Sequence record: OP589283.1 | Strand: one strand, 5' to 3' | DNA: 64,000 nucleotides | Part shown: piece after piece, positions 2,614 to 51,049 of the stretch | Layout: every line of letters starts with the position of its first letter | How positions within the stretch are numbered: position 1 is the first letter of the stretch | Position numbers and translations under genes: made by a program | The notes under the pieces: model-generated | The model's database searches: none | What the model was told of the DNA's origin: nothing | Seen by the model: the letters and a program-made list of their open reading frames with translations, nothing else

Positions 2614-3159
2614 ATGGCAACTAAACCTTACATTGTTTACACCGATGGTTCTGCATTAAAAAATCCAGGGCCAGGTGGATACGGTATTGTGCTAAGGCTA
2701 GGAAGCCAAATGACAACCTTATCCAAAGGATTTAAACTCACCACCAATAACCGCATGGAAATTATGGCAGTAATAGTGGCATTACAAACGATAGGAGAAG
2801 GAAAGAAAGTCGAAATCCACACAGATAGCGAATACACCATTAATGCAATCACTAAGTGGATTTTTGGCTGGAAGAAAAATAACTGGATTAAACATGACGG
2901 TGGGTCAGTAACCAATCGAGATTTAATCGAACAACTTGACGAACTTGTTCGATTAAATAAAGTCACATTTATCAAAGTAAAAGCTCACGTCGGTATCCCA
3001 GATAACGAGTTAGCTGATAAATTGGCTAAAGAAGGTGCTGGTAATCCCACAGAAATTGATGAGGGATATTTAGAAGAGTTAGCTAAACCTAAACCCCCTG
3101 TTGTCAATAACAATTATCAAAACAAGTATAAACCCTGGTACTATAAAAAGAGAGCATAA
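2614..3159 (+). CDS. rnhA: ribonuclease HI
   Basis: YTDGSALKNPGPGGYG, TTNNRMEIMA, IHTDSEY and KAHVGIPDNELADKLA; all four catalytic acidic residues present; AGGAG SD. Confidence 0.96.
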   Translation: MATKPYIVYTDGSALKNPGPGGYGIVLRLGSQMTTLSKGFKLTTNNRMEIMAVIVALQTIGEGKKVEIHTDSEYTINAITKWIFGWKKNNWIKHDGGSVTNRDLIEQLDELVRLNKVTFIKVKAHVGIPDNELADKLAKEGAGNPTEIDEGYLEELAKPKPPVVNNNYQNKYKPWYYKKRA

Positions 3160-3161
3160 AA

Positions 3162-3716
3162 ATGATCCCGCAATATAAACCCAACGTAAGTTTAATTACT
3201 GCCAAGATAGGCAAAATAGTAAACAACCTATATTGGTTAATTAGTAACTCTGGAAGTTCAATTCAATATCCAAAAATTGAATTGGGTAAAGACCGCGTAG
3301 TTGTTAATCGACACTTGATTAATTTACTCACTGTAAATGAAAAAGATTATATCACCTACCTAGCTTTCATGTATAGACTCAATGAAGAAGAAAATGTGGT
3401 GGTGCACTTCAAAGTGGATATGGAGAAATTTGAAGTCACCGATTTTCCTGTTGTATTAAATACGCTTGTCAAAAGTATTTTGAACACATCATCGCTTGTT
3501 CATGAATACGGTGTTGTACTTAATCGAGATAACTTTATAAAGTATGTGGGATTGGTTGGTTATGTAGACCAATATGAAATTGAATCAATTGAAACATCAT
3601 TATTTAAGATGATGATTTCTGATGAAGACATACCTCCTTCTACTTACGAAAATATCCGATTGTTAGAACTCAATGATTTCATTGGGGATTTCCTCCAAAT
3701 GTGTAAACGTGTATAA
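3162..3716 (+). CDS. hypothetical protein
   Basis: 184-aa ORF directly after rnhA. Confidence 0.7.
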   Translation: MIPQYKPNVSLITAKIGKIVNNLYWLISNSGSSIQYPKIELGKDRVVVNRHLINLLTVNEKDYITYLAFMYRLNEEENVVVHFKVDMEKFEVTDFPVVLNTLVKSILNTSSLVHEYGVVLNRDNFIKYVGLVGYVDQYEIESIETSLFKMMISDEDIPPSTYENIRLLELNDFIGDFLQMCKRV

Positions 3717-43001: not shown

Positions 43002-44462
43002 ATGAAACCAACCAGAATTAAATTATTAGACCCCAAAACAATTTTTCCACCTCTTATTAACGAAGTGAGTAGTGGGGACACGTTTGACCGGGGCACGCAC
43101 AACCTTCACGAAGAAGGGTTATATTCTCCTACCATCTTTGGTAGAATCGGACGTAAAGACCGGTTTTCCAAAGAAGGGTTTATCAATACGGGTGCACCTA
43201 TTTTAAACCCCACGTATTATAAAACTATCGTGGGATTGAACAACGGTCAAAACGGTTTATACGCCGGTATTTTGAAAGGGATCGTTTACGCAAAATGGGA
43301 TGCCCAGAAAAAGGATTTCATAAAATCCGATATCATCGAAGGAAGAACAGGATATAGTTTCTTTTTAGAACACTTATCTGAGTTCGCACCTGAGTTAAAA
43401 GATTCCCATTCCCGTAAGCAAGCCATTAAGTTAATTTTGGAAAACAAAGATAAAGCATTAATGAAACGCTTTATTGTCATTCCGGCAGGTTTACGGGATA
43501 TTGAACATCGCCCCGATGGTGGGGTTAAAGAAAAGGAAATTAATAAAACGTATCAACGTTTAATTTTCCGTGCCCGTTCTTTACAAGGTATTAACGAGCG
43601 TGATGAGAACGATCCTGTTTACGATAACTCTCGTGCATCCATTGGTGAAATTGTTAACGAAATAGACCACGAACTGTTTGAGATGTTAAACGGTAAGAGT
43701 GGTTTCATTCAATCTAAAGTAGGTACCCGTGGTTTAGTCAGTTCTACTCGTAACGTGATTGTGGCCAGACAAGTCAGTCGTACTCATTTAGACGAAGATG
43801 ACGGTAAAGGCATCAATAGCACCGATATCGGTTTATATCAAGCAATGTTGATGTACAATTATGCTTGTTTACATGAACTGATAAACGGTTGGTTATCCAC
43901 TATTTTTACAATAGGGGCTAACGTGGGTAAATTAGTTGATACCAAAACCTTAACTTCAGAATACGTGGATTTGAAACCAGACACCATCAGTAAGTGGACA
44001 ACCGTTGAAGGGTTAAATAAACTCATCTATGGTTTCAAGAACGTCCATCTACGCCATAAACCAATTGTGGTGGAAGGTTACTACCTTGGGTTAGTTTACG
44101 ACGATGGTAAAGAGGTTAAACTACTCAGTGACATCGGCGAACTTCCAGATGGAAGGGATAAAAAGTTTGTCACTCCATTGACGTACTTTGAAATGTTTTA
44201 TTTAATTTGTAACCAAGCCATTAAACAAAACCTGATGCAACAAACGCGTTACCCCATTATCGGTATCGGTAGTACGTATCCTTCTTATAACAATCTTGTT
44301 ACGGGAAGTGAAAACAAACCCCGTAACGTATTAAATGAAATGTGGGAAACCGAATATCGTTGTTTAAGTTATCCTGAGAAATCAGAACATCCAGTTTATT
44401 ATGACGCAATGTCTGTTGACATTAGTCGATATGCTAACTTGGACGCTGACAACGACGGCGAT
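43002..44462 (+). CDS. virion RNA polymerase beta' N-terminal subunit (phiKZ gp180-like), exon 1
   Basis: GLYSPTIFGRIG, VIPAGLRD, LNGKSGFI...RNVI, RYPIIG; ends at the catalytic LDADNDGD. GAGG SD before ATG 43002. Confidence 0.9.
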
Positions 44463-46263
44463 TTTCTTGTACATTAATAAAGATGTGATTATTGCACCTT
44501 CGTGTTCTATTTTATATAGATAAAACCGAGGAAATAACATGTCACTCTTTACTTTACATTATCTTAAACTTCCAGAGTCAAACATTACGTATGAACTCAA
44601 GAATGATTTTTTGTTCTACGATGGAGAAACCACTCTCCCCCACTTAACTTTTACTGACAGCCCAGATAAAGTGTTGGTTAAAAATCCGTCTCCTAAGAAG
44701 GAAGGTGACGCTTACCTTACACTGGATAGAGGGTTACTTATTCTTTTTGCATGTCGTCGTTTCTATCTTCCTCTCAGTTTATGGAGGATGGTTGATATTC
44801 AGTTTTTAGATGATAACACAAAAAATTATGACCCTCGTAACTTATATGTCATGTACAAAGAAAAAATACCCTATCCTGAATTGGAGGGATTTTACTACAT
44901 ACCAGGACACGAACTGAACGTCATCAATGAAAAAGGAGTGGTGTTTAATATTCCTTGCTCTAAACTCAGACCCCCGAAAATAAACAATGCGCACATTGAT
45001 AAGAACACCTACATCGGTACCACTGTAGAGATAAAACCTCATAAGTTTGTCACAAGGGTGTTACATCGATTACTAGGGTTGGTATTTAAGAACCCCCCCA
45101 AGGGTTATCCTAATTGTGTGGTAGACCATTTGAATGCGGTAAAGTACGATTTCTCATTGGATAATTTAGAATGGGTATCGTCAGGTGAGAATAATGACCG
45201 TGCTAAACAAATGGGGTTACGAACGGACAATAAACGAGTTGAAGTGTTAGACACTAAAACAGGTATAACGTCCACATACATCTCAGGTAATAGTGCAGCG
45301 GCCGCTATAGGCTGTTCTAACGGGATTTTGAGTAATGCGTTTACAAGTGGTTCTAGGGTAGTTAAAAAGCGGTGGAAAGTAAGGTACGTTGGAGAAGAAG
45401 TCAATTGGGATTCGATTTCAATCAAACCCAGCGGAAACTCAGAAGTAAAACCTATTTTAGCCAGAAATGTTGTGTCTGGTCATATTCGTAAGTTTCCGAG
45501 TGTAAGGGAAGCCATGCGAGTATTGTCAAAAGAAGGTGTACGCGTTCATTTGGCATCCATCACCAGACAAGTTAACAACTCTGCGGAGAAACGAATAACA
45601 GGCGGGTATGAATTCAAATACCAAGATGATAGTACACCTTGGCATGTATTCACTGAATGGGATGTAGAGGTATTTAGACGCGGCCTCAATACTCGTACAC
45701 CTGTTTATAACGTTACCGATGTTACCACCAAAGAGTCAACCATTTACTTTGGTTGGCAACCAGTTGCTTTATTAACTGGAGTAGAAAAGCGTGCTGTACT
45801 CATTGCAGCGGCTGAGGGTGGTATACTGGCTCGTAAGTTTAAGATAGTAAAGTTAAGGTAATAATGTATTATGTCCAGCTAGGCGCGAAAGCCCTAGACT
45901 GTTTTCCTTTGAATTGACTGGGACGACCACAAAAGTGAACCGCTACTGCTCATTAGAAATGATGAGTGACAGAGACGAAAGTCAGAAACAATGGTGTTCA
46001 CCTGCCCTATGCTAACCAATAACGCTAAGGGGTATTGACAAGGGTCTATCAGCAGCTAAGCTCCGTACGAGGGTTATCCCTCAGGAGAATGTCCAACGAC
46101 TAAGGCCTAGCCAGCCTGTACTCATGACATGGATTCGTTGTGGGGAAGTGGAGGAGACCTAAGGTTACAAAAGTAACTATGGTTAAGATATAGTCTGTCC
46201 CTGGCTTAAGAGCAAGGCGGGTGTCTGTGCACACCGGGTGTAAGTAATACACCGGACAAAGAG
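44463..46263 (+). mobile_element. group I intron (~1801 nt) carrying an HNH endonuclease ORF
   Basis: P AATTGACTGGGA (45912), Q ATCAGCAGC (46048), R GTCCAACGACTA (46091), S AAGATATAGTCT (46185); 5' exon ends in U, intron ends in G; splicing restores DGD-QLNANG in frame. Confidence 0.88.
44539..45861 (+). CDS. intron-encoded HNH homing endonuclease with three NUMOD1-like DNA-binding repeats
   Basis: VVDHLNAVKYDFSLDNLEWVSSGENN HNH motif; repeats KRVEVLD..TYISGNSAA, KPILARN..KFPSVREA and PVYNVTD..IYFGWQPVA; own GAGG SD. Confidence 0.92.
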   Translation: MSLFTLHYLKLPESNITYELKNDFLFYDGETTLPHLTFTDSPDKVLVKNPSPKKEGDAYLTLDRGLLILFACRRFYLPLSLWRMVDIQFLDDNTKNYDPRNLYVMYKEKIPYPELEGFYYIPGHELNVINEKGVVFNIPCSKLRPPKINNAHIDKNTYIGTTVEIKPHKFVTRVLHRLLGLVFKNPPKGYPNCVVDHLNAVKYDFSLDNLEWVSSGENNDRAKQMGLRTDNKRVEVLDTKTGITSTYISGNSAAAAIGCSNGILSNAFTSGSRVVKKRWKVRYVGEEVNWDSISIKPSGNSEVKPILARNVVSGHIRKFPSVREAMRVLSKEGVRVHLASITRQVNNSAEKRITGGYEFKYQDDSTPWHVFTEWDVEVFRRGLNTRTPVYNVTDVTTKESTIYFGWQPVALLTGVEKRAVLIAAAEGGILARKFKIVKLR

Positions 46264-46434
46264 CAATTGAACGCTAACGGGATTGTTGCAGAAGACAGTA
46301 AAGAAGAATGTAAAGGTTTATTCGGTAAACGTGACTTTTACATTGGTGGTGGGGATAACTTTTATTATACCCCGGTTACTGATACATTGGCTTGGTTGCT
46401 TAAATCTGCAACTTCGGGACTTAAATCCGTTTAG
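46264..46434 (+). CDS. virion RNA polymerase beta' subunit, exon 2 (56 aa, QLNANGIVAED...SGLKSV)
   Basis: Open 57-codon frame starting right after the terminal G and ending 8 nt before the beta gene; absent from the ORF track. Confidence 0.8.
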   Translation, partial: QLNANGIVAEDSKEECKGLFGKRDFYIGGGDNFYYTPVTDTLAWLLKSATSGLKSV

Positions 46435-46442
46435 GAAAGATT

Positions 46443-49400
46443 ATGAAACAGGCACCTTTATATGAATTGTGGTATCGTAAGCTCGGGTTACGTAAAAAGC
46501 AAAACATTGCTAACCCAATGTTTTTGTCTTTAGCGGAATTGAGTTTACCGTTATACAGCACAATTCATTATTTAGCAAAACATGAAAATGAGTTAGGCCC
46601 CAGCCCAAGTGAAACGTTAATTTCAAATTGGTTGGGCGAAAACATTTACATTAACTTTGTGAACACCTATACTCCTTATATTGGGAGTATTGGCCCTGCT
46701 GTGTTTGATCTACGTAAAAACATTAAGAAATATCGTGCAAGTCATTTTAACTATAGTTGGATTATGAACATCAATGACGTCTATAAACGTCGTGAAAATT
46801 TGATTGTTTGGAACCACGCTTGTGCGAATAAAACGTTCAAAGTAAGAGCAAGTCTTTTTGCTACCTATGAACGTTATTATAATGATTTCCGTAACGTAAT
46901 CGAAAGTGTTAATACCGTTACTGAAAAAGGATTACGTAATCAATTTTTAAGAATTGAACTACCCAATCGGATGCCGAACTTTTTACGTATTAGTGATGAT
47001 TTAAATCATTTTGCTAAGGTGCGTAGAGAATACGCCAAAACCGGCAAGATGATGCTGAATAAAGAAATGATGCGTCAGACAAAAGGCGAAAGTTGCTATT
47101 GGGTATTAGAGTTACTCAGCTTCTTATTAACAGATTTAGCAACTAATAAGAAAGGGGAAGAAGCTGAAGAAAAAATTAAAATAAGTTTATTTAACCTACT
47201 CAATGATGAGTCTAAACATAAATTAAATATTGTGTTTAGTTATCAAGGTACCGGATTTGTCGTTAACCTTGGTTTATTAGAAAGTTGGTTTAAAGAGCTT
47301 CGCGATGATGGTAGTCGTGTTAATGGTTTCAAACGTTTCTATCTTTCTCTTATCAAGTTGTCTAGCACCGAAATGGTTTTAGAGGACGAAAATGAAGAGA
47401 TTAAAAACACTGTCGAGGAGACTACGGAAGAACCAGAGGAACTGGATGAAGATGAGTCAGAGGCGCCCATTGAAAAAGATGAGCAAAAGGTCGCTGTTCA
47501 CGATACTACTCCTATTCTTGATATTTTCGCTGATCAAGTCGATTCTGATGACGGAAGTCTTCAATCCGGAGGAGACGAGGGAGGGGAAGATGATTCTGGA
47601 GAGCCTGCTGAACAGTCGTGGACCGATCCAGTAGACGATAGTCTATTTGAAGAGCCTGAGGTTGCCACTGAGACGGATTCAGGTCGTAATGTATTCGCTG
47701 ACCCTTCCGCAGGTATTGAACGCAGTCTTCGCTTAAAAGGGAAAGAGAACGGTATTAGCGCAAGAGAATACGCTCTCTTTAAAAAGAAATCGGAGTCTTA
47801 TAAAAACATTGTGTTACCTAACGGTGAAACGATGGAAACGTTTATGAAGATAGACGAAAAAGAACTCCGTAATCTTGACGGTAAAATTAAGGGGACTTTT
47901 GAAACCGTAAAAGACCCTTCGTTATTACAGTCTCGTACTTCGGAATTGCGTAAAGGGTACGTGAAGAAGTTTTTACATAAAGACATCATTCGTACTTTAG
48001 TTGCTTTCCAAAACAGTGGTACCGCGTTAACTGATTTGTCTATCACTGAAGAGGGTGACAAAGAAGGGATGTATGAAATTTATAACGCGCAATTCCATCC
48101 TGTTGGGGGAACTGTTAAAACCGTTCCTATTCGCATGCCGAAAGTGCTACCTGACTGCACCATCATGATAGATGGTAATAAAAGCTATTTACAAAACCAA
48201 CGCATGGAACTCCCTATTCGTAAGGTGAGACATGACGAAGTAATGCTATCTAGCTTTTATGGTACACGATTAAGTTTAAAACGCAGCCGTATGGTGAAGG
48301 ACGATTATCATCTTTGGTTATTACGTCAAATCATCAAAGGGGATAAAATCAACGGTTATCAAATTGCATTGGGTCGTAGTAAAACAAGCCACTTAAAGGT
48401 TCCTCAACTTTATTACACGCTTGCAGCCAAATTTAAATCTATTGCATTTGATGACATGACCTTTGTTTTCTCAATGGACACGTTGATTGAAGAAGACCCA
48501 GCGATTGAAAAGTTGAATTCCCCTGATAGTGTAGTCATCGGTAAAAAGGGTGACAAATACATTACATTGGATGCGTTTAACAACGTTTATGTCGGGGATG
48601 AGTTAAAAGGTGGGTTTACTGAGTTAGTTAAAATCGACCAGCGCAAAGCTCCTGTTGATATGGTGAGTTTGTTGTTGAATAACGTAAACTTCCCTATTGT
48701 TATTTTGTTGTGTTATTATTTCGGTATCGATAAACTATTGCAGGTTACCAAAGCAAATTATCGTGTGGTACCGAGTAATGAGAAAACTGTCTTAACCAAT
48801 GACGAATTCAAAGTCGTATTTAACGACGAGACACTGGTCTTTAACCGTAACGACCGGGTGACCACGTTAATCTTTGGTGGATTAGTTGGGTTGAAAAACT
48901 TAAGTAACTTTAACAGAGTTGACTTAAATAACAACGATAACTTGCTTACGGTGATGGGTTCGGAAAGTAAAGCAAAAATCACTCACTTCTATGAAATGGA
49001 ACGGCTGTATCGTTTGTTCATCGACCCTATCACTAAAGATGAATTAATTCGTCTGAAGTACTCTGTTGACTTTGATTATTTGTTGTTGGATGCTGTTGAG
49101 CTATTAAAAGACAGTTATCACCGCAATGAAGTGGAAATTGAAGAGCAACGGATTAGTGGTTATGAACGTTTAGTTGGACACATGTACACGCAACTCTGTC
49201 GTGCTAACCGTGAATACGGTAACAAGACAACAGGTAAGAAAGTTTTCTCATTAAATCCTGATGCTGTGTTGATGGCCATCCAACTGGATACCAGTTTAAA
49301 CCAAGTGGAAGAGGTCAACCCATTCCACCAAATCAAAAGTGATGAGGAGGTTACGTTCGGTGGTACTGGTGGTCGCGGTGACGATGTAATGGTCGCCAGA

Positions 49401-49601
49401 ACCCGTGCTCAGCTACAAAGTTATCGTGGTGTGATTTCTGAAGCGCATAAAGACAACCAAAAGGTGGGGTATGTTACCCACTTAACGTCAGATGCTCGTA
49501 TCAGTGATTATCGTGGTAACATTGATAGCAAAGAAACAATAACCAATGCAGGACTAGCGTCTGTAACAGGTAACTTGTATTACGGTTCCTTTAAAGATGA
49601 T
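46443..49601 (+). CDS. virion RNA polymerase beta subunit N-terminal part (phiKZ gp178-like), exon 1
   Basis: IDGNKSYLQNQR, QVEEVNPF, VTFGGTGGR, GVISEAHKDNQKVG; ends ...GSFKDD. Confidence 0.88.
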
Positions 49602-49942
49602 CAACATAGGGTCCCCTTATTTGGAAACAGATAAGGTGCTATAACCTCTAATTGCTGGGAGGGTTTGTTAAACCTCATTACACCACTGCGTAACTGGAAA
49701 CGGTAAACGTGAAGGTTTGAAAAGTAATGAGCTGAACCTAGTCAGCAGCAAAGCACCTAAGGTATTGTTGAGATAACAAGATACGGTGTGCGTCCAGAGA
49801 CTATCGCTGAAATGCGAGTAGGGGTCTAGTGTGATTCCGAAACGGGGTTTGCTTACCGTGGACTGAAGAAGTCCTATACGGTTGCATGAAATATAGTCCA
49901 CTGTGTTCGATGATTTCTTATGGATAAGAATAGAGCACATTG
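49602..49942 (+). mobile_element. group I intron (341 nt) without ORF
   Basis: P AATTGCTGGGA (49650), Q AGTCAGCAGC (49740), R GTCCAGAGACTA (49792), S GAAATATAGTCC (49888); exon 1 ends GAU, intron ends G; splicing gives DD-PKR in frame. Confidence 0.88.
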
Positions 49943-51049
49943 CCCAAGAGAACCAGCTTCAGTAACGGCCAAGCATCTCAAATCATGGCGTCATCAGGTT
50001 ATCAAGTTAACCCAATGCGCACAGGTTATGAGGTAGTCATGCCACATCGAAACTACGACCTTTACACTAAGGTTGCTGAACAAGATGGGGTGGTTACTGA
50101 AGTTACCGATAAATATTTATTGGTAACTTATAAAGACGGTTCGACAGACACCTACTTGTTAGGTTATGAAGTGGGTTCTGCGGCAGGTGAGTATCATAAG
50201 CACAATAAAGTAACCGATTTAAAAGTAGGTGATAAATTCAAAGCCGGAGAGGTGATTGGATTTAACGATGTGTGGTTTGCTCGTGACTTCTATAATCCAG
50301 GGCAAGTGGCTGCTAAAACAGGTATCTTGACAGGTGTTGCGTTAACCCAAGGGATTAACGTTTACGAAGACAGTATTAGTATTAGTGCTGATTTCGCTAA
50401 AAAGTCAAGCTCCAGCTTCATTAAGCAGATTAGCTTTAGTGCGGCTTTAAAAGACACCATCGTTGAAAAAATCAAAGTGGGGCAAACAGTCGATCATGAC
50501 CAAGTGTTATTTGAGGTCATTGAAGAGAGTGTTGCAGCACTTAACGATGAGAATGAGGACGCGGCTGATATTAACCGTTTAGGCATTCGACAAGTTAAGA
50601 GTAACCACCACGGTGTGATTAAAAAGGTCGAGGTTTCCTACAATGGTGATTATGCTGATATGAGCAGTTCAGTCTTGAAGTTTGTTAAACCTAAAGACAA
50701 AGAAGTTGCTGACTTAGCAAAAGTCACTAAAAGCAAGATTGTTGACAACCGAGTATCAGGTGGTAAAAACGTTCCTCCTGGTCGTATCAAAGTCCGTGTC
50801 TACATTGATGCGGAAGAAAGCAGTGTGGTTGCTGACAAATTTGTAGTGGGTAACCAAATGAAATGTACTGTTAACAGTATTTACACTAAGCGCATGTACA
50901 CTCAATCTGGTATTCCAATTGACCTCACATTCAGTTATAAGAGTTTGTTTGGTCGGATGGTATTGAGTTTACGTGATAAGTTAGTGGGTAACCAGTTAAC
51001 TGAAATCGTTTCAAAACAATTTGTTGATATTTACAGGGGTGAACAATGA
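49943..51049 (+). CDS. virion RNA polymerase beta subunit, exon 2
   Basis: PKRTSF, YEDSISIS (equivalent of bacterial FEDSI) and DKFVVGNQMKCTV (equivalent of GDKMAGRHGNKG). Confidence 0.88.
   Translation, partial: PKRTSFSNGQASQIMASSGYQVNPMRTGYEVVMPHRNYDLYTKVAEQDGVVTEVTDKYLLVTYKDGSTDTYLLGYEVGSAAGEYHKHNKVTDLKVGDKFKAGEVIGFNDVWFARDFYNPGQVAAKTGILTGVALTQGINVYEDSISISADFAKKSSSSFIKQISFSAALKDTIVEKIKVGQTVDHDQVLFEVIEESVAALNDENEDAADINRLGIRQVKSNHHGVIKKVEVSYNGDYADMSSSVLKFVKPKDKEVADLAKVTKSKIVDNRVSGGKNVPPGRIKVRVYIDAEESSVVADKFVVGNQMKCTVNSIYTKRMYTQSGIPIDLTFSYKSLFGRMVLSLRDKLVGNQLTEIVSKQFVDIYRGEQ

Follow-up and report, generated by a model that had tools for sequence, protein, structure and literature searches.

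The last 64 kb of the genome of Shewanella phage FishSpeaker (OP589283.1, 203,356 bp; host S. oneidensis MR-1) contain the genes for two subunits, β' and β, of the RNA polymerase (RNAP) that is packaged into the virion, and both genes are interrupted by a group I intron. This stretch of 64,000 nucleotides, referred to as the window, is identical to the record; window positions equal the OP589283.1 position minus 139,356, and the exons, introns and intron elements of the window described below lie on the plus strand. The β' gene corresponds to the N-terminal part of β'; its exon 1 (43002..44462) encodes 487 amino acids and ends with LDADNDGD. It is followed by an intron of 1801 nucleotides (44463..46263), which carries the gene of an HNH endonuclease (44539..45861), and by exon 2 (46264..46434), which consists of 56 codons and a stop codon. 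In the GenBank entry, the coding sequence (CDS) 182358..183833 (window 43002..44477) is annotated as 'RNA polymerase beta subunit' and is followed by 'HNH endonuclease'; both the intron and exon 2 of the β' gene are absent from the feature list. A sequence-only reading of the window had anticipated that annotation would present the gene as truncated, and the GenBank CDS indeed stops early. Judged from its sequence, the β' intron is real, is missing from the public annotation and belongs to a kind of element that is already known; from the same source we infer its splicing in FishSpeaker, the activity of the encoded endonuclease and the target of this enzyme.

Sequence orthology and a shared order of genes support the assignment of the interrupted gene to the virion RNAP β' subunit, as an ortholog of phiKZ gp180. 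Exon 1 aligns over its full length with PhiPA3 gp212 (32.7% identity, E 1e-78), whose record notes similarity to phiKZ gp180, and the genes are arranged as in PhiPA3: a large, oppositely oriented lysin/tail-fiber gene, gp212, gp211-gp210-gp209 (phiKZ gp178-like) and, later, a head maturation protease. A homolog in Klebsiella phage N1M2 carries the name virion-associated β'. In the PDB, a profile of the family matches β' of the AR9 RNAP (7S00/7S01, E about 1e-15) and bacterial β' chains, and these matches cover the metal loop gDyDGDvLn. The β' chains were reached by the family profile alone, since direct phmmer searches of the PDB with exon 1 of the β' gene and with exon 1 of the β gene gave no matches; Pfam likewise has no match to either RNAP exon. 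The gp212 orthology, the gene order and the AR9 β' match thus agree with the sequence-only reading, which had already named the gene a virion RNAP β' gene. In phiKZ, Gp180 is the DFDGD-bearing subunit of the virion RNAP, which assembles with Gp178, Gp80 and Gp149 and of which approximately 10 copies are packaged per virion (PMC10612078).

Exon 1 ends with the codons GAC GGC GAT, which encode the DGD of the motif DADNDGD; the last aspartate codon, GAT, occupies positions 44460-44462, and U44462 is the 5' splice site nucleotide. Read-through beyond this point adds F-L-V-H before a TAA stop codon is reached at 44475-44477, in line with the earlier statement that the frame stops four codons after the motif. 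The frame resumes directly after G46263, where exon 2 starts with QLNANGIVAEDSKEEC and encodes QLNANGIVAEDSK...; the unannotated frame 46264-46434 reads QLNANGIVAEDSKEECKGLFGKRDFYIGGGDNFYYTPVTDTLAWLLKSATSGLKSV in full and corresponds to the hidden exon of 56 amino acids that had been postulated at this place. A database search in which exon 1 alone was the query retrieved 557 homologs, and most of the best 120 are around 538 amino acids long. When both pieces of the window were entered as separate rows into an alignment with 22 intron-less homologs, the end of exon 1 and the start of exon 2 fell into adjacent columns (DGD|QL) with no residue extra or missing. The intron-less homologs read DxDGD-QLNxNG continuously, as exemplified by P0006 (57% identical; DHDGDQLNANGIMGEDSK), so that the proposed junction GGCGAT|CAATTG, the rebuilt DGD-Q-L and the expected QLNANG-like continuation in intron-less homologs are all found at the sequence level. 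The same boundary is given by PHROG 2986, a profile of 539 positions, of which 6-489 match exon 1 and 490-538 match exon 2 (boundary 489|490). In the family alignment, D483, D485 and D487 are nearly invariant. The junction also obeys the group I rule, with a U preceding the 5' site and a G preceding the 3' site. The proposed 5' site is followed by a run of U-rich sequence (UUUCUU, with several U residues), and P1 pairs weakly; both could speak for a different junction, for instance one at which extra residues are kept after DGD. However, GAU|CAA alone restores the homolog alignment without gap or insertion, a shift by a single base would yield a stop codon or convert the catalytic aspartate to glutamate, and the GAU/GUCC register is common to all nine aligned introns described below; we regard another junction as extremely improbable.

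Three relatives from metagenomes have an intron at the same site of the β' gene: L002, L003 and the more distant L006. In the comparison of the window with L002 and L003, exon 2 shows 81-90% amino acid identity at 75-81% nucleotide identity, and there is no start codon near the 5' end of exon 2 in L002 and L003 (CAA CTC.. and CAA CTA..). Since the protein is better conserved than the DNA and the border lacks a start codon in these relatives, exon 2 appears to be translated, and solely as a continuation of exon 1. These observations bear on the idea that the element is a dead relic that is not spliced at all, in which case β' would either be truncated and non-functional, or consist of two polypeptides (487 and about 55 amino acids) that assemble unjoined. 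RNAP genes of jumbo phages are naturally split (PMC7598289), and in the window, exon 2 has an in-frame TTG at codon 2 with AAAGAG just upstream. Yet a two-piece protein is hard to reconcile with the exon 2 borders of L002 and L003, and the break would lie inside the metal-binding loop, one residue past the third aspartate, which is no known natural split site. FishSpeaker is, moreover, a viable isolate and dependent on its virion RNAP.

The intron itself bears a group I ribozyme. The Rfam model RF00028 matches 45853..46217 with 53.9 bits (gathering score 50; whole-window E 6.9e-11; model positions 1-253), and the classical elements P (AAUUGACUGGGA), Q (AUCAGCAGC), R (GUCCAACGACUA) and S (AAGAUAUAGUCU) are aligned within this match. 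The complete P/Q/R/S core that had been recognized in the sequence-only reading is therefore recovered by the group I model search proposed there. Chance is excluded by the Rfam E-value together with the residue-exact junction, and the in-frame stop codons, together with the match to RF00028, rule out an intein or a group II intron. The fold was assessed in an alignment of nine introns (A2), which comprises the two introns of the window, those of L002, L003, L006 and L008, both introns of L009 (L009A and L009B) and the PhiPA3 intron; the scored structure spans P2 to P9.2, was completed by hand and includes the P3/P7 pseudoknot. Standard pairs occupy 93.2% of the alignment cells, as opposed to 32-48% when the 3' partner is slid by one to three columns. 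Compensatory changes occur in 27 of the 53 pairs, and the observed values were reached in none of 500 column shuffles.

The P2 hairpin (45877..45900) shows compensatory changes in six of its nine pairs, and P3, formed by the 5' strand 45905-45910 and the 3' strand 46150-46155, in four of six. P4, which contains the P and Q elements, pairs 45914-45921 with 46049-46055 and is supported by both the covariation alignment and the Rfam match. It is followed by P5 (45925-45928 with 46043-46046), which carries an extension of approximately 115 nucleotides, and the block from the P3 5' strand to P5 covers 45905..46055. The P6 hairpin (46061..46087) and the P9, P9.1 and P9.2 hairpins (46200..46252) are derived from the covariation alignment. 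In P7, the guanosine-binding helix with the R and S elements, GACUA at 46098-46102 pairs with UAGUC at 46191-46195; all alignment cells are paired here, and one double compensatory change is seen, in L009A. Enclosed by P7 (46098..46195) are extra hairpins (46103-46149), the P3 3' strand and P8 (46156-46184). The insert of 47 nucleotides at 46103-46149 lies where subgroup IA introns carry P7.1/P7.2 and contains one short predicted hairpin with some compensatory changes. The last intron base is the terminal guanosine (omega-G, 46263), and the introns of all relatives end in G, too. Across the window, L002 and L003, the ribozyme core of 390 nucleotides is 95-97% identical, compared with 75-81% for the exons at the nucleotide level. 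This conservation despite the divergence of the exons and of the HNH gene, together with the compensatory changes in the fold, argues against a dead relic, which we consider very unlikely.

The sequence-only reading had left P1 unassigned by eye; it can now be assigned to the exon bases GAU at 44460-44462, which pair with GUC (45873-45875) of the internal guide GUCC at 45873-45876, with U44462 opposite G45873 as a U.G wobble. The guide (columns 1-4 of A2) is invariant in all nine aligned introns, and GAU precedes every 5' splice site. As the guide is located 3' of the HNH gene, this gene sits in the P1 loop. Conservation between the window, L002 and L003 starts abruptly at AUGUCCAGCUAGG, just past the HNH stop codon. 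A P1 extension helix, composed of GUACAUUA (44469..44476) and UAAUGUAU (45862..45869), would close the HNH-containing loop. Three other pairings were rejected. A local hairpin after the 5' site (UUUCUU/AAUAAAG, with G44482 opposite U44462) has an A.A mismatch beside the splice site and is not conserved in L002 and L003, and conservation begins only at the GUCC behind the ORF (open reading frame). Pairing of AUUGC (44490-44494) with exon GCGAU yields U-A instead of U.G and is not conserved, and the register GACG with UGUC obtained by duplex folding in the window disagrees with that of L002 and L003. Six bases ahead of the terminal G, GGAC at 46254-46257 is fully complementary to the guide; the element occurs in seven of the nine family members, where it shows no covariation, and could represent an alternative pairing that competes with P1.

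The HNH gene encodes a protein of 440 amino acids and is preceded by a Shine-Dalgarno-like GAGGA (44528..44532, as read from the sequence) six nucleotides ahead of its start codon. The protein matches Pfam HNH_3 (E 4.8e-9, residues 191-219) and PHROG 59 (HNH endonuclease), which substantiates the earlier identification of an HNH ORF within the intron; NUMOD1 reaches 19.7 bits and remains below its cut-off of 22.8. It is 24% identical to PhiPA3 gp210 (E 2.6e-18). H197, N209 and N218 are invariant in eight homologs, and H197 aligns with the catalytic residue H82 of gp210, mutation of which abolishes nicking (PMC11620839). Upstream of the gene, the motif CTATTTTATA (44507..44516) is conserved in related introns amid unconserved surroundings. 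In the form CTATNTTATA(K), it is found 22-40 nucleotides upstream of the HNH start, at the same relative position in L002, L003 and L004 and approximately so in L006 and PhiPA3, and a single copy is present in the window; it might act as a promoter or regulatory signal for the endonuclease gene. Among the window, L002 and L003, identity amounts to 44-59% in the stretch ahead of the HNH gene and to only 31-53% in the HNH proteins. Set against the 95-97% identity of the core, this suggests that the cassette with the endonuclease in the P1 loop is swapped independently of the ribozyme.

Taken together, the element is very probably a mobile group I intron that is functional and has to be removed for the catalytic subunit of the infection-initiating enzyme to be produced. 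According to this model, the pre-mRNA would fold so as to pair exon GAU (44460-44462) with GUCC (45873-45876), the guide, and to place the U.G wobble at the splice site, and the extension helix 44469-44476/45862-45869 would close the P1 loop of 1.4 kb that contains the HNH gene. The P3-P9 core would bind guanosine at P7 and cleave after U44462, and the freed exon would then attack after G46263, thereby joining GAU|CAA. The predicted product is a protein of 543 amino acids with an intact ...DADNDGDQLNANG... magnesium loop and 56 C-terminal residues, and its junction peptide would be YANLDADNDGDQLNANGIVAEDSK. The HNH protein, produced from its own start behind GAGGA, probably nicks intron-less alleles in co-infecting relatives, by which the intron would be spread or protected.

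Several points weigh against this model. FishSpeaker is named nowhere in the literature searched, and the protein database contains no identical protein of the spliced length. The P1 exon pairing comprises three base pairs in the window and likewise in L002; in L003, exon GGAU (Gly codon GGG) adds a fourth pair. The extension helix of the window is AU-rich and has a z score of -1.2 in per-locus shuffles, a value reached by 12% of the shuffles. Helices of differing sequence are found at the same position in L003 (z = -4.9), L006 (z = -4.1), L008 (z = -6.6, 12 perfect pairs) and, more modestly, L002 (z = -2.0), and the ORF-less L009B has a plain hairpin of six base pairs at this place, as read by eye; a cross-pairing energy matrix for the extension could not tell cognate and non-cognate pairs apart. 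No P10 was found either: the bases located 5' of the guide showed no complementarity to CAAUUG in the window or to the corresponding place in the relatives. Many group I introns can do without P10. Furthermore, introns predicted in phiKZ showed no splicing in long-read transcriptomes (PMC10914365), which makes intron predictions of this sort fallible and is also what a dead relic would predict. The short P1, the missing P10 and the unseen splicing of the predicted phiKZ introns call for caution. The first two of these features could mean that splicing does take place in vivo, although the intron lacks autonomy and needs a protein helper, either the HNH protein as a maturase or an RNA chaperone of phage or host, in which case self-splicing in vitro would fail. 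For T4 introns, translation is required for efficient splicing in vivo, as reported by Sandegren and Sjoberg (2007) according to the citation in PMC10914365. However, relatives with the same GUCC guide lack an ORF (the second intron of the window, L009A, L009B and L014), which rules out a general requirement for the HNH protein, and the core has all canonical helices. Helper dependence is therefore considered unlikely, though less so than a dead relic.

Group I introns with intron-encoded endonucleases are present in essential nucleotide-metabolism genes of phage T4, namely td, nrdB and sunY; their endonucleases are of the GIY-YIG or other types, and their ORFs are looped out of other helices. 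One of the closest known counterparts of the functional mobile intron proposed here is found in PhiPA3, which belongs to the same phage group and shares the gene cluster (lysin/tail-fiber, gp180-like and gp178-like genes). In PhiPA3, the gp210 intron splits the virion RNAP β gene gp211/gp209, the ortholog of phiKZ gp178, immediately behind two conserved aspartates (PMC11620839); the sequence-only reading had erroneously placed this intron in the non-virion RNAP. The phiKZ allele is cut by gp210, the HNH nickase that the PhiPA3 intron encodes (Birkholz et al. 2024, PMC11620839). As in the window, the 5' splice site follows GAU, and the HNH gene comes first, followed by the GUCC guide, P2 and the core. 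The two ribozymes can be aligned (51% identity) and have a common covarying fold, the HNH proteins are homologous with a conserved catalytic histidine (E 2.6e-18), and both introns adjoin catalytic or fidelity aspartates. In contrast to PhiPA3, where the β gene is interrupted after DD, the first intron of the window lies in the neighbouring β' gene after the third aspartate of DxDGD, and its HNH protein has about 115 additional N-terminal residues. Introns in RNAP subunit genes are also present in the Bacillus phages AR9/PBS1 and in Staphylococcus MarsHill-like jumbo phages; however, these are only distantly related to FishSpeaker (about 25% identity, partial matches). A further parallel is provided by the DNA polymerase introns of SPO1, SP82 and Bastille (HMU phages), which, going by the title of Goodrich-Blair and Shub (1994) as listed in PMC11620839, are group I introns that resemble one another and carry strongly diverged HNH ORFs. 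The conserved core next to divergent HNH proteins (95-97% versus 31-53%) and the insertion into a conserved site within a polymerase gene that is essential resemble these I-HmuI-type introns, which differ in host gene and phage group.

The second intron of the window lies in the virion RNAP β gene, the ortholog of phiKZ gp178, between the exons 46443..49601 and 49943..51049. It covers 49602..49942 (341 nucleotides), has no ORF and possesses the GUCC guide, P7 and all the other helices. Rfam detects it in a local search only (28.1 bits, E 4e-5), and whole-window Rfam searches with either the gathering or the E-value threshold missed it. The first β exon ends with SFKDD (GAU|) and the second starts with PKRTSF; the intron-less gene of L002 reads SFKDDLKRTSF. 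Because SFKDD|PKRTSF corresponds to SMNDD|MKRVGF at the PhiPA3 intron, the second FishSpeaker intron occupies the PhiPA3 site, where it carries no ORF, unlike its counterpart in PhiPA3. In GenBank, the β gene is represented by two separate CDS, the second of which starts too late (window 50039). In L002 (7034-11086), the β' intron is present and the β gene is uninterrupted; the second aspartate codon at the β site is GAC instead of GAU, which lacks the U required at the 5' splice site.

The catalytic loop of β' is an insertion hot-spot in the relatives of FishSpeaker. Among the best 120 homolog clusters, at least 25, or roughly one in five, stop inside this loop, and the 18 nucleotides encoding GG-D-x-D-G-D are interrupted at five staggered positions. 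Nine loci were examined in addition to L002 and L003: L004 and L006-L010 (metagenomic, found by homolog search), L015 (metagenomic, found by a signature scan), Aeromonas phage CF8 (L011) and the ORF-less L014. The splice site follows GG in L010, the first aspartate (D1) in L009A, the second (D2) in L008, L009B and L015, the glycine of DGD in L004, L007 and CF8, and the third aspartate (D3) in the window, L002, L003, L006 and L014. A U precedes every splice site in the examined loci. The introns after the glycine represent a second type with a P1 of six base pairs, in which the guide covaries with the exon (GCCAUC/GAUGGU in L004 and GCCGUC/GACGGU in L007). Rfam at E<0.01 missed the introns of L004 and CF8, and a nhmmer profile of the family detected them. 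In CF8 (MK774614), the interrupted gene is annotated as hypothetical proteins. L009 (positions 2718-3654 of a Logan SRR26448590 contig) contains one intron at 2718-3217 (Rfam 67.9 bits) and another at 3224-3654 (54.7 bits), which are separated by a micro-exon of six nucleotides, CACGAU, encoding the His-Asp of the catalytic loop GSD-HD-GDQL.

Core similarities, taken here in place of a phylogeny, suggest that sites are switched within one intron lineage, since the core of the D3-site intron of the window is as close to the D2-site intron of L008 (72%) as to the D3-site intron of L006 (69%). It is tempting to speculate that a single lineage with a three-base guide, GUC reading GAU, moves among aspartate GAU codons, that is, the three aspartates of the β' DxDxD motif and the DD of β, and that this movement is RNA-guided, by reverse splicing or ectopic integration, and not purely homing driven by an endonuclease. 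Such movement would explain the staggering over D1, D2 and D3 and the double intron with its micro-exon, and would fit HNH cassettes that are swapped independently of the ribozyme; we put it forward tentatively and hold it to be possible, if on balance doubtful. By analogy with PhiPA3, the FishSpeaker intron could serve as a weapon that cuts the catalytic codons of the virion RNAP of co-infecting relatives.

For FishSpeaker and several relatives such as Aeromonas phage CF8, public records present the catalytic virion RNAP subunit as a truncated protein. This annotated version lacks everything past the metal-binding loop, whereas the true product would require RNA splicing, and the neighbouring FishSpeaker β gene is mis-split in the same manner. 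The PhiPA3 gp210 intron is the only studied relative of these elements and gives its phage a competitive advantage by cutting the virion RNAP gene of a rival. With a family intron in each of two catalytic-subunit genes and a host that is tractable and harmless, FishSpeaker would be a convenient second system. Finally, all members of the main lineage share the invariant GUCC that reads GAU, which makes a change of group I insertion site directly testable.

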